This document shows positions 5,599 through 42,846 of a stretch of 64,000 nt of DNA, in pieces. Position numbers and translations under genes: made by a program. Under the pieces are notes generated by a model. The model saw only the letters and a program-made list of their open reading frames with translations. It was not told the origin of the DNA and did no database searches. The stretch is from Hemiscyllium ocellatum (Eukaryota). Each line of letters begins with the position of its first letter. The stretch's first letter is position 1. The DNA lies in NCBI RefSeq assembly GCF_020745735.1, contig NC_083402.1:20660004-20724003 (forward strand). Direction: 5' to 3'.

Positions 5599-5880
5599 TG
5601 GGCAGCACGGTGGTACAGCAGTTAGCACTGTTGCCTCACAGCACCAGAGATCTGGGTTCAATTCCCACCTCAGGCGACTGACTGTGTGGAGTCTACACAT
5701 CCTCCCCGTGTCTGCGTGGGTTTCCTCCGGGTGCTCCGGTTTCCTCCTACAGTCCAAAGTTGTGCGGGTTAGGTAAATTGCCCGTAGTGTTAGGTTAGGG
5801 GGTATGGGTGGGTTGCGGGTCGGTGTGGACTTGTTGGGCCGAAGGGCCTGTTTCCACACTGTAAGTAATCTAATCTAATT
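5599..5880 (+). mobile_element. HE1-type tRNA-derived SINE
   Basis: A/B-box head (ggtggtacagcagttagc...gggttcaattccc), V-like core, CR1-like tail and (TAATC)n. Confidence 0.9.
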
Positions 5881-18880: not shown

Positions 18881-19273
18881 TCGGCATCTGTGTCTGTGAT
18901 GGAAGCAATGCACCTTTTCACTCTTTTCCTTGTGACCTGATTTTGAAGAATCCCTGTTCCCACACTCCCCAGCCCCACCCACAACCTTCTTTATTGTTCG
19001 TTGGATTTTCTGAATTAATTGGAGGCACTTAAGTCCTCACACAGTATGGTATGAAATGCCAACTGCACACTTGTAGCCTGTGTTGAGCATGTTAAAAGTG
19101 TTAAAAGTCAATGTTGAGCAATTAAATGCTGTATGAGAAACAGATAACTGTTTTCTCCCCTCAATAGGCAGTTCCCTAATGGATATATTTAAGCACCCTG
19201 ACTCCTAATGTTTCCCACTTTGCCTTAAAACTTCGCTCCCCAAGAAAATTGGAAATGGTCAATAATATCCAGT

Positions 19274-19566
19274 TTAGATTAGATTACTTACAGTGTGGAA
19301 ACAGGCCCTTCGGCCCAACAAGTCCACACCGACCCGCTGAAGCGCAACCCACCCAGACCCATTCCCCTACATTTACCCCTGTCCCTAACACTACAGGCAA
19401 TTTAGCATGGCCAGTTTACCTAACCTGCACATTTTTGGACTGCGGGAGGAAACCCACGCAGACACGGAGAGAATGTGCAAACTCCACACAGTCAGTCACC
19501 TGAGACGGGAATTGAACTCAGGTCTCTTGGCGCTGTGAGGCAGCAGTGCTAACCACTGTGCCACCT
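19274..19566 (-). mobile_element. HE1-type SINE (young)
   Basis: (TTAGA)n tail, core, tRNA head. Confidence 0.9.
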
Positions 19567-21349: not shown

Positions 21350-22155
21350 AAAGACCAAAGAACAGTACAGCACAGGAACAGGCCCTTCAGCCCTCCAAGT
21401 GTATGCTGACACATTTTGCCTTCCATACTAAAACTGTCTTATTATTCATGTATTCATCAACGTATTTCTTGAATGATACTATTGTGTCTGCTTCCACCAC
21501 CTTCTCTGGCAGTGCATTCCAGGCACTCACCACCCTTTGTGTGAAAAAATTGCCCCAAACATCTCTTTTAAACATCCCCCCCCTTGCACCTTGAATTTGT
21601 GGCCCCTAGTAATTGACCCTTCCACCCTGGGAAAAAGTCTCATGGTTTCCACTCTATCCATGCTATTAACAATCTTATAAACTTCTATTGGGTCACCTCC
21701 CAACCTCCTGCGTTCCAGTGAAATCAAATCTACTCCATCAAACCATTTTTGTAGCGAAAATCTCACAAACCAAGCCTCTGCTGCTCTGTCAGAATTCATC
21801 CCCATGCATTACACATTAAGTTAATTAATGATTACTTTTTGGTGGAATTTGGTTTGCTTTTTTCTCTTATTCTTAAATCTTTTCTGTACCCTCTCCAAAG
21901 CATTAGAGAAGGTAGTGTGGTTACCAGAACTGTCCAAGTGTGGTCTAACCAAAGTTCTATGAAGCTGCAGCATAACTTGTATATTCCTATACTCAATGCC
22001 CCTTCCAATGAAGTCAAGCATGTTTGACTACCTTATCGACCTGCACTACCACCTTTAGTGATCTGTGGACCTGCAGACCCAGATCCTTCTGCAGATCAAT
22101 ACTCCAAAGGGCTCCGCCATTTACTGTATAATTTTCACCTGTATTTGACCTTCCA
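21350..22155 (-). mobile_element. CR1 3' fragment with a templated 104-bp insertion
   Basis: FIGRGIEYR, LERRRLGGD, FFTQRVVSAWNALP. Confidence 0.88.
21774..21877. repeat. Inverted copy of 23544-23647
   Basis: 104-bp reverse-complement match, roughly 90% identical. Confidence 0.92.
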
Positions 22156-24024
22156 GTATAATAACAGGAGCATATGTATGATCTTTAAAATTTCTCCAGT
22201 ATTGAAATTGTAAAATGTATATTTTGTTTTGTTTTTATATCTATGCATCAAAATCTAAGCAGCATATGGTTAGTTGTCTGATGATGTGTCTGTCATGAAC
22301 TATTATCCATCTTCAACACTTTTACATGATTCTTTGCAGAGGATACAAAAGAGATTTATTAGGATAGTACAAGGGTTGTACAATTTCACCTATGTTGAGA
22401 CACTAGAGAAACTGTTGTTTCTTAAAGCACAGATATTTTAAGGAGCCTTTAATAGGTATCATTTAAATCATAAGCCGTACTGATAAACTAGACAGGACTG
22501 CTTCAATTGGTTGGGTTAGGAACCAATGGACACCAATGGGAAAAGCACCTCAGGTGAGACAAGGAGAATAATTTGGATCCAGGGAATTATTATGATCTGA
22601 AAGACAGCATTTGATGGTGAGAGCAATTTTAACAATAATGCTGAACAGAAGATTGGGTGCAGTTTCACGAAGAAAAAAAAATGTCTGCTGATGAGGAAAG
22701 AACAGAGGAGTGACTCTAAGCAGCAACTCTTTCGAGAGCTAACACTAATGTGCAAGCTAACGTGTATTTATTGAATCATTCAGTCTCCTTCCTCTAATTT
22801 CTTATGTTCATTTGCTTGTACTCCTGATTATGCAAACTTTTGATTACCAGAAATCAGCTTGCATGGAGAACAATACAAAAATCATTTGTAATGAGTCAAA
22901 ATAAATATTATTTTGCTGCTGAGACTGTCCTTTGTGTCAGGTAGTGATTATAAGGGGTTATAAAGGTATTTAATGGTTGCACTTAGGAAAGGCCACAGTC
23001 ATTTATTAGGAATACAGCTGCATTATGCTTGGTCGTTCCGGACAACCGCTTAATAGAGACAGAGGGTAATTGAAACTGACAGTTAATCATAAACAATAAT
23101 TCACAACTAATTTCTCCAATGGTACCACACAATGCAAGAGCATGCCTCGCATGGTTCGAGATCTGCAGTACTGGAGACTGAATTCCCTCAGGGAGTAATG
23201 GCATTTAAATGTAATCTTTCTTCATAGTCGACGTGGAGGTTCCTTTTAAAAGGCTTCCAGTTCTAATATGTGGGTTCTAATGCTTTTGCGTGTGCAGGAT
23301 GAATTCAAATTACACAGGATGCAGTTCCGCACTTGAAGGAATTATTTAATCCACCTTGACAGACAAGGAGCATTAGAATAGATAAACTGTTGGTGGAATT
23401 TCAGCTTCAAGGAACAAAGTGGAAAAAATAATGGGCAATCGCTCTTTCCATCAAATCGCACGCGCATTGTCATGAACAGCCATGGACTTGATAATATGAT
23501 TCTTCACACTCCCCAGGCATTTATCACACAAAAGTGTTTCCACTTTGAGAATAAGCGAAAAAAGCAAACCAAATTCAACACAAAAGTAAGCATTGATTAA
23601 CTTAATGTGTAATGCATGGGTGTGAATTCTGACAGAGCAGCAGAGGCCAGAGGCCCAGACTATACTTCTGGAAGGAGACAATCCTCTCTTGGCTGTTTTG
23701 GGAATCTCCAGCCACACTTTAGACCCATGGTAAAACTAATGAGCTGCTGTCAGGACTCCAGTCATATTAAGGCGTGTCAACCTACCTCTGGCTCTTCTGT
23801 GCCAATGGCGCTCCAAGGAGAAGTGGCCACTGTTGGGACTGCAGCTGCTGACGAACATTGACACTATTGGGAACATTGTGCAGCCACCAAGTACTCACTT
23901 AGAGACAATCCACCTCCCTCAAGTATGCGGGAATGTGTCAGGATTCACTGGTTGCACTCAAGCTGTGGAGTAGTCATGTTTCACTGGAAAAATGCCAGCA
24001 GGGAAACTATGCTGCAACTTTTAT

Positions 24025-24721
24025 AGTGTCATACAGTCATACAGCATGGAAACAGACCCTCAGTCCAACACGCCCGCAGCAACCAGGCATCCCATCTGAC
24101 CTCGTCCCATTTTCCAACATTTGGCCTATATGCCTCTAAACCCTTCCTATTCATATACCCATCCAGATGTCTTTTAAATGTTGTGATTGTACTAACCTCC
24201 ACCACTTCCTCTGCCAGCTCATTCTATACACACACCGCCCTCTGCATAAAAAGGTTACCCTTCTGGTCCCTTTTAACTCTTTTCCCTCTCACCTTAAACC
24301 TCTAGTTCTGGACTCCCCCATCCTGGGGTAGAAGACTTAGATTAGATTAGATTAGATTAGACAGAGTGGAAACAGGCCCTTCGGCCCAACAAGTCCACCG
24401 AAGCACTACCCACCCAGACCCATTCCCCTACATTTACCCATTCACCTAACACTACGGACAATTTAGCATGGCTAATTCACCTAAATAGACCTTATCTATT
24501 TATCCTATTCATGTCCTTCATGATTTTATAAGCCTCTATAAGGTGAGCCCTCAGCCTCCGACGCTCCAGGGAAAACAGCCCTAGCCTTTTCAACCTCTGT
24601 CCATAACTCAAATCTTCCAGTCCATGCAAAGTCCTTGTAAATCTTTCTTGCAGCCTCTCAAGTTTGACAATATCCTTCCGATAGAAGGGCAAACAGAATT
24701 GTAGATATATTCTAAAATGAC
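24025..24721 (-). mobile_element. CR1 3' fragment abutting or interrupting the myosin fragment
   Basis: PFYRKDIVKLERLQERFTR...LFSLERRRLR. Confidence 0.9.
24337..24485 (-). mobile_element. 5'-truncated HE1-type SINE nested in a CR1
   Basis: (TTAGA)5 tail plus partial core. Confidence 0.85.
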
Positions 24722-24900
24722 CTTTTCATTGATGTAGTTGGTCCACTACATGACTACTCTGATGAATTCAGTTCAAACATTTCAAAACCAGCAATATCCA
24801 AAATGCCTAGGAGAATGGCTCTGAACCACTTTGCCCAACACAAAGCCTTGTTGATGCGGTGAATGACTCGATGAAAGAGACATTCATGAGCAACGTTTGC
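24722..24900 (-). pseudogene. Decayed processed fragment of a non-muscle/smooth myosin II heavy chain (MYH9/10/11/14-like) motor domain, switch II region
   Basis: Translates [50 protein letters not shown](frameshift)-NYINEK. This is gap-free colinear with [58 protein letters not shown]. It carries a stop and a frameshift. Confidence 0.88.
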
Positions 24901-25822
24901 TCAAGCTGATCGACCACTGAAGTGGTACGGTTGATCTTTTGGATTAGACAGCCAACCTCCATCTTCTCTAGCACAGGCAGGTTGCCAATGGTGGGCAAGT
25001 GAAGCTCTCTTCGCCCCATGCCTTCCCTTGCCAATTTAGCACCTCCCAGCCAAACCCCATTGTCTCTTACTCCATCCCTGGTGGACTGAGAAAATCCAAC
25101 ACTCAGTGAGCTTAAGTTAAACGGCAATGGTCTAATAAACAGTGCAAAGATGGTTCCAAACACAATAAAAGGTCTGACTGCAGCTCAAATTGTGTAAAAT
25201 CCTTCAGACAGCCTTTTCATTTCCCCCGCTGTTAACAAGGAAGAGCTTGCCAAAATCTGAAATTAATAGCCCACCAGCTCTAGCAGTATAACACAGGAAC
25301 ATATTTAAGGATGTAACACCTCCGCAGTCTCTGGTCACATTGCTACTCCCCCGTGCATTACATTTATCATTTTCACCATTTTCTAAACTCCTCAATAGAT
25401 CCACCCATTGTAAAATAGTGATATCCATGTCAGTATCCGCAAATTTGATTCCATTGGTCAAGTTTATTTGCAGGAGGTATTTTAACTGTCTGACGTAACA
25501 TGACATGCGCAGCTTAATGATATGAAGGAACAATACAGGAGGGAAGATCTCAGAATTCACCATACATGTAGTAGTATTGTCAATGGATTCCTCAGACAGG
25601 CACTCACAATTCAGGTATAAAAGGAAATCGCTACCACGCAGTCATAGAAACATAAAATCCCTACTGTGCAGAAAGTGGCCATTCAACCTATTGAGTCTGC
25701 ACCAGCCCTCCAAAGAGCATTCAACCCAGACCCAGTCCCCCTCCCTATCCCTGTAACCCAGCATTAACCACGGTTAACTCACATAGTCTGCACATCCCTG
25801 GATATACTACAATTTAGCCTGG

Positions 25823-26040
25823 TTTAGGTCAGAGTGGTGCTGGAAAAGCACAGCATGTCAGGCAGCATCTGAGGAGCAGAAAAATCAATGTTTCGGGCAA
25901 AAGTCCGTCATCAGGAATGAAGGGCTTTTGCCCAAAATGTCAATTTTCCTGCTCCTCGGATGCTGCCTGATCTGCTGTGCTTTTCCAGCACCACTCTGAT
26001 CTAAACTCTGGTTTCCAGCATCTGCAGTCATCACTTTTGC
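25823..26040. mobile_element. Fold-back PLE terminus inserted into a SINE
   Basis: Inverted gtggtgctggaaaagcacagc arms. TSD ctacaatttagcYtgg at 25807-25822 and 26041-26056. Confidence 0.85.
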
Positions 26041-42527: not shown

Positions 42528-42846
42528 TTAGATTAGATTACTTACAGTGTGGAAACAGGCCCTTCGGCCCAACAAGTCCACACCGACCCACCGAAGTGCA
42601 ACCCACCCAGACCCATTCCCTCACATTTACCCCTTCACCTAACACTACGGGCAATTTAGCATGGCCAATTCACCTAACCTGCACATTTTTGGACTGTGGG
42701 AGGAAACTGGAGCACCCAGAGGAAACCCACACAGACACGGGAGAATGTGCAAACTCCACACAGTCAGTCGCCTGAGGTGGGAATTGAACCCGGATCTCTG
42801 GCACTGTGAGGGAGCAGTGCTAACCACTGTGCCACCGTGCTGCCCA
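42528..42846 (-). mobile_element. Full-length HE1-type SINE (young)
   Basis: Complete head (gggcagcacggtggcacagtggttagc), core and (TTAGA)n tail. Confidence 0.92.

Follow-up and report, generated by a model that had tools for sequence, protein, structure and literature searches.

A probable partial processed pseudogene of a MYH10-like non-muscle myosin, apparently split by a CR1-like element, in the genome of Hemiscyllium ocellatum

A 64,000-nucleotide (nt) stretch of the Hemiscyllium ocellatum genome (assembly GCF_020745735.1, contig NC_083402.1, positions 20,660,004 to 20,724,003; hereafter the window, whose own numbering is used throughout) contains on its minus strand a short piece of sequence derived from the motor domain of non-muscle myosin II. 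With a probability of roughly 80%, we interpret this piece as a non-functional processed fragment of a MYH10-like messenger RNA (mRNA), comprising ~94 codons around the switch II region and later split by a CR1-like long interspersed nuclear element (LINE).

In the three-frame translation of positions 23950-25250, the minus-strand segment 24757-24900 yields 48 stop-free residues flanked by two stops. These residues match the Pfam family PF00063 (Myosin_head) with an E-value of 5.2e-10 and a score of 38.7 bits, the curated cut-off of the family being 33.3 bits. The best match in the PDB is non-muscle myosin IIB, or MYH10, at residues 427-472 (E 8.5e-9), followed by MYH11 (4.5e-7), MYH9 (9e-7), MYH14 (1e-5), and MYH7 (2e-4). 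As read off the PDB alignments, HRINKAL and the E-L of FE-LNS are MYH10-like rather than paralogue-like, so that the parent was probably of the MYH10 type. The tryptophan found at the second arginine of the MYH10 sequence DRTKR was also counted as fitting MYH10; it is one CpG transition away from the parent codon if that codon was CGG, and the codon at this place is AGG in L002, one of the three MYH10-type genomic contigs (L001, L002, and L003) used here for comparison. Downstream of the 48 residues, after a change of frame, the sequence continues as WTNYINEK.

Frameshift-aware and DNA alignments to the MYH10-type coding sequence of L002 divide the piece into two parts, both on the minus strand. 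The 5' part (24722-24939) corresponds to MYH10 K414-K482, that is, to the relay and switch II region with HRINKAL...NYINEK. The 3' part (23943-24017), starting with LQHSFPAGIFPV-KHDY, corresponds to L483 to ~N507. Hence the myosin-derived DNA amounts to ~293 nt or ~94 parent codons (MYH10 K414 to ~N507), out of a parent mRNA that we take to be several kb long. No further myosin extension was found in the alignments upstream of KEQ, and no other myosin pieces were found in the window by tblastn with a 246-residue MYH10-type partial protein from the L002 exons, a query that covers the protein to ~residue 565 and leaves the rod unsearched. As the adjacent stretches of the motor domain are equally conserved, the ends of the piece are real breaks and not points where the similarity fades.

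An earlier reading of the letters without database searches (the sequence-only reading) had recognised the similarity to the switch II region of myosin II, and the Pfam and PDB matches on the minus strand agree with it. It had assigned ~60 codons at 24003-24965 to the copy; myosin similarity is indeed present there, but the size was too small, as the copy spans 23943-24939 and comprises ~94 codons. Its description of the copy as an internal piece of an mRNA and not a 3' end holds (~K414-N507, no poly(A)). It had also placed the copy in an intron of gpm6a, a label that is not confirmed, as a motif scan of the context found nothing.

The window is contiguous at a position where MYH10-type genes have an exon junction. 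It reads FEMFE/LNS, or TTTGAA/CTGAAT (a slash marks an exon boundary), with no extra base, so that the codons for E and L at 24769-24774 (minus strand) are adjacent, with the junction between 24772 and 24771. In L001-L003, a canonical GT..AG intron of ~0.4 kb lies exactly after FEIFE (GTAC...GCAG). The 9.6-kb contig L002 has the structure ...KEQ/GTAAGT...TTTTCAG/ADFAVEAL...FEIFE/GTACTT...TTTTTGCAG/LNSFEQ...IERP/GTAAGT; L003 is like L002, and the intron at FEIFE/LNSF is ~407 nt long in L001. In addition, a library-wide HMMER search with the 48-residue piece retrieved 29 proteins, mostly short open reading frames (ORFs); these were fragments only, with no full-length myosin among them. In 24 of the 29, the MYH10 exon ADFAVEAL...FEIF(E/Q/K) is followed by V and unrelated residues, that is, it runs into an intron starting with GTN, the V-led tail resulting from the ORF caller reading through the GT splice donor. 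At the other end of the exon, 15 matches also show Q/ADF (CAG acceptor). One of the run-on matches (P0001) is a sarcomeric-type myosin, and as it shares the intron, the position of the latter predates the myosin II paralogues. The intron between FEIFE and LNSF, which the sequence-only reading had named, is therefore present both in the contigs and in the run-on ORFs. Since the window is contiguous where MYH10-type genes carry an intron, the copy is RNA-derived. A second junction, KEQ/ADF (24925-24939, minus strand, between 24931 and 24930), is probably also spliced: the window has AAAGATCAA/CCGTAC, compared with AAAGAACAA/GCAGAC, and 8 of the 9 nt of AAAGATCAA are identical to those that end the upstream exon.

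These observations bear on the possibility that the piece is a DNA-level duplicate of a part of a myosin gene, or a copy of an intron-free parent, made with no RNA intermediate. Such an origin would suit a short piece that has neither poly(A) nor a clear target-site duplication, and the intron is known from MYH10-type genes of other vertebrates, not from the shark parent. However, the FEIFE intron is present in three MYH10-type loci and marked by 24 run-on ORFs including the sarcomeric-type one, and thus predates the paralogues, while the window has no extra base at this junction and KEQ/ADF appears spliced too; we consider the DNA-level origin highly improbable.

Two side observations concern the library matches themselves. 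The exon ADFAVEAL...FEIFE of MYH10 is protein-identical in more than 20 unrelated genomic contigs (P0004-P0029), some copies ending in Q or K and not in E. It is very strongly conserved, and public ORF collections contain numerous intron run-on artefacts of it. In P0001, P0002, and P0003, the switch II exon region is duplicated internally; these duplications are probably artefacts of assembly or gene models, or else tandem exon duplicates.

The copy has decayed. Compared with the MYH10-type coding sequence, residues are kept at 38 of the 69 in-frame codons. The frame is interrupted by a TGA at a parent leucine codon (24901-24903, minus strand) and by a TAG at a parent glutamine codon (24754-24756, minus strand), and a 5-nt insertion following the latter (~24741-24747) shifts the frame ahead of NYINEK. 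Four of the five arginine codons are now TGT, CAT, TGG, and TGG, the pattern expected from C-to-T and G-to-A changes at methylated CGN. At the first and second positions of codons other than those for leucine, arginine, and serine, 24 of 106 sites differ (p 0.23), which corresponds to a Jukes-Cantor estimate of 0.27 substitutions per site. The CpG-type decay, the stop, and the frameshift described from the letters alone can all be traced here, in the arginine codons, in two stops and not one, and in the 5-nt insertion. An open frame through the motor domain, as in a functional PF00063 myosin, is absent, the locus having two stops, a frameshift, and ~94 codons only. Judged by its sequence, the locus is a partial processed pseudogene that is old and dead, with neither a recognisable regulatory context nor any indication of function. 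The probability that the resemblance is due to chance, or that the piece is an exon of a live myosin gene, is practically negligible: its short length is the sole point that would speak for either, against E-values of 5e-10 and 8.5e-9, two stops, a frameshift, and ends that have no splice sites.

The two parts of the copy are separated by the CR1-like LINE (24018-24721, minus strand), which is truncated at its 5' end and retains the last ~115 codons of ORF2, the 3' untranslated region, and a tail of 8-nt repeats. It lies on the same strand as the myosin piece and starts directly after AAT GAA AAG, the last codon being K482. When 24018-24721 is removed, the frameshift-aware protein-to-DNA alignment pairs NYINEK LQHSFPAGIFPV-KHDY with NYTNEK LQQLFNHTMFILEQEEY; it resumes at the very next codon (L483) and is colinear for 25 more codons, and the DNA alignment extends as far as GAGTGGAAT (E-W-N), where it stops at 23943. 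We assessed this 3' extension by forcing the alignment to start at the first base after AAAAG and comparing it with random segments of the same window. The resulting P-values were 0.0003 for DNA with linear gaps, 0.003 for DNA with affine gaps, 0.003 for protein without gaps, and 0.006-0.01 for protein with gaps and frameshifts. The pentanucleotide AAAAG is present at both ends of the LINE, at 24722-24726 and at 24018-24022, the second copy falling within the coordinates given for the element. Finally, a least-squares star decomposition of the pairwise distances between six CR1 copies gives this copy a branch of ~0.145, versus 0.27 for the myosin piece; the gap amounts to roughly two standard errors and has the sign that a younger CR1 would give, though this comparison has wide errors, as it uses 106 sites and ignores the subfamily structure of CR1.

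This arrangement has to be weighed against a chimera, in which the CR1 reverse transcriptase would have switched templates to the myosin mRNA at K482 and copied it back to K414, both sequences arriving together. The shared strand and the position of the myosin piece directly 5' of a 5'-truncated CR1 are what such a switch would leave; 2-3 nt of possible microhomology (AG or AGG) are seen at the junction, an internal mRNA piece without poly(A) would be accounted for, and LINE chimeras are known for L1 and for fungal LINEs (PMC4476161, PMC2104539). On the other hand, in a chimera the DNA past the CR1 should be unrelated target sequence, and the CR1 should have no duplication of its own. The opposite is seen, as the myosin sequence resumes beyond the CR1 at the next codon (P 0.0003-0.01), AAAAG flanks the CR1 alone, and the divergence of the CR1 appears to be about half that of the myosin piece. 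This favours insertion into an older retrocopy and makes the chimera very unlikely. The sequence-only reading had made the same choice, from a same-strand CR1 right after NEK, a repeated AAAAG, and KLQHSF on the far side; all three are seen, with K LQHSF following the second AAAAG, and the lower divergence of the CR1 now supports the choice further.

The identity of the LINE was assessed from its relatives in the window. Segments 24021-24336 and 24483-24717 align with four to five further copies at 75-87% identity (blastn), and the C-terminus of ORF2 shares 55% identity (E 2e-20) with the ORF2 end of a near-intact element at 32.3-35.7 kb. The latter (32353-35672, plus strand) encodes the Pfam domains Exo_endo_phos (E 3e-19) and RVT_1 (E 1e-35) and has a 516-residue reverse transcriptase (RT) ORF; it may be related to the CR1 copies scattered over the window and may have been active recently. 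The LINE ends in 8-nt repeats, ...TGTATGAC TGTATGAC ACTAT, like other copies. It thus has all the hallmarks of a CR1-like insertion, namely homology to the 3' end of a LINE with an endonuclease and an RT, 5' truncation, a tail of 8-nt repeats, and a short target duplication. The assignment to the CR1 clade rather than to L2 is our assumption, made from the motif and the tail.

The LINE itself is interrupted by a short CR1-like tail with a (TAATC)n end (24344-24484, minus strand). Copies that are 82-85% identical to it lie at 19271-19423 and 42528-42677, and CR1 homology resumes on both sides of it. This ~140-nt element, of which a further copy is found inverted at 5774-5879, may be SINE-like (resembling a short interspersed nuclear element) or a subfamily consisting of the tail only.

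In the scenario that we propose, an RT would have copied a stretch of a spliced MYH10-type mRNA, whose complementary DNA (cDNA) would have been integrated on the minus strand long ago. The copy would then have drifted neutrally under CpG methylation. Later, the CR1-like LINE would have been inserted between K482 and L483 by target-primed reverse transcription, duplicating AAAAG and being 5'-truncated within ORF2, and the short CR1-like tail element would have entered the CR1 after that.

Several observations weigh against this scenario. No A-rich tract that could represent poly(A) is present at the 3' end of the copy (at 23943 or just below). The sole repeat common to both ends of the copy is AATCC, which is at chance level, and thus there is no clear target-site duplication, although a short one would be unrecognisable at ~27% divergence. 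The presence of the intron in the MYH10 gene of the shark is inferred from other vertebrates, in which it is widely conserved. The KEQ/ADF junction is weak, with 9 nt only, and its anchored upstream extension has a P of 0.07 with linear gaps and 0.01 with affine gaps. When each flank is aligned on its own, free local DNA alignment gives no significant match, with a P of 0.17 for the 3' flank and 0.45 for the other one; therefore, the case for the 3' part rests on colinearity at a position fixed beforehand. Under a harsher mismatch penalty (2,-3,-4), the score of the 3' extension is not positive. It is also conceivable that a repeat family in the genome carries the piece.

We also considered the piece as cargo of a transposable element, either of a long terminal repeat (LTR) retrotransposon that picked up the mRNA by template switching, or of a multi-copy repeat family. 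Retrocopies made by LTR elements are typically partial, doubly truncated, and devoid of poly(A) and target-site duplications (PMC5131818), and the piece is likewise short of both ends of the mRNA, with neither poly(A) nor a clear target-site duplication. However, the flanks (22024-23543, 23648-23942, and 24940-25647) have no match elsewhere in the 64-kb window, the flank ORFs have no Pfam match, no protein-database relative was found for a 118-residue flank ORF, and Rfam found nothing in 22000-27000. LTR-like direct repeats were not seen around the piece, although these tests are not sensitive to an old element. Transport by such an element is quite unlikely. As for the first integration of the processed fragment, there is nearly an even chance that a short cDNA either arose by template switching or was taken up at a break; with a somewhat lower chance, the piece is what deletions have left of a longer retrocopy, and carriage by an LTR or other element with unrecognised flanks is unlikely.

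Two other features were noted in the vicinity. The A-rich tract nearest to the myosin piece is at 22222-22236 on the minus strand (AAAAACAAAACAAAA), 1.7 kb 3' of it, and no link to the retrocopy is shown. Segments 23544-23647 and 21774-21877 form a 104-nt inverted pair with 91% identity, the second one adjoining a CR1 3' fragment at 21527-21805.

The nested series, from the retrocopy to the CR1 to the short CR1-like tail, could date CR1 activity once orthologous loci of other sharks are compared. Retrocopies are fewer outside therian mammals, and their limitation in the presence of CR1 has been attributed to recognition of the element's own 3' end (PMC5470649). The locus described here adds one data point on the entry of poly(A)-less mRNA pieces into genomes in which the main LINEs each recognise their own 3' end; the significance of a single locus is small, and a genome-wide survey is needed to make this entry informative. 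It is a tentative and rather doubtful idea that the piece was made by a route other than poly(A)-primed, L1-type retroposition, such as template switching by the RT of a stringent-type LINE or of an LTR element, or capture of a short cDNA in break repair. If it were true, internal mRNA fragments would be the typical class of retrocopies in shark genomes dominated by CR1, and counting them across the genome could reveal the enzyme. The sequence-only reading had called processed pseudogenes uncommon in CR1-dominated genomes; they are indeed fewer, but the rarity argument is weaker than implied, with counts in the hundreds reported for chicken (70-720), coelacanth (472), and teleosts (zebrafish, 195-652; PMC5470649).

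Compared with known systems, the piece is colinear with residues ~414-507 of the MYH10 motor domain (PDB 4pd3, 9z3w) and keeps LDIAGFE (switch II), HRINKAL, and FE-L; unlike that domain, it keeps 38 of 69 residues, has two stops and a frameshift, and does not form a gene. With the LINE-RNA chimeras, such as the U6/L1 template-switch chimeras (PMC4476161) and the tripartite chimeric pseudogenes of Magnaporthe (PMC2104539), it shares an mRNA piece abutting the truncated 5' end of a LINE on the same strand; it differs from them in that the myosin sequence resumes past the 3' end of the LINE and the LINE is flanked by an AAAAG duplication of its own, and the LINE/myosin junction appears, from these features, to be an insertion scar and not a switch point. 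Like the partial retrocopies mediated by LTR elements (Tan et al., 2016; PMC5131818), it is internal and doubly truncated, with neither poly(A) nor a clear target-site duplication, but no LTR sequence was recognised in its flanks, and the sole adjoining element is a later LINE. Although it differs from L1-type processed pseudogenes in comprising only ~290 nt from the middle of the mRNA and in lacking both poly(A) and a clear target-site duplication, it shares with the processed pseudogenes catalogued in vertebrates (PMC5470649) the source in a spliced mRNA, the location apart from other myosin exons, the neutral decay, and the later transposon hits.

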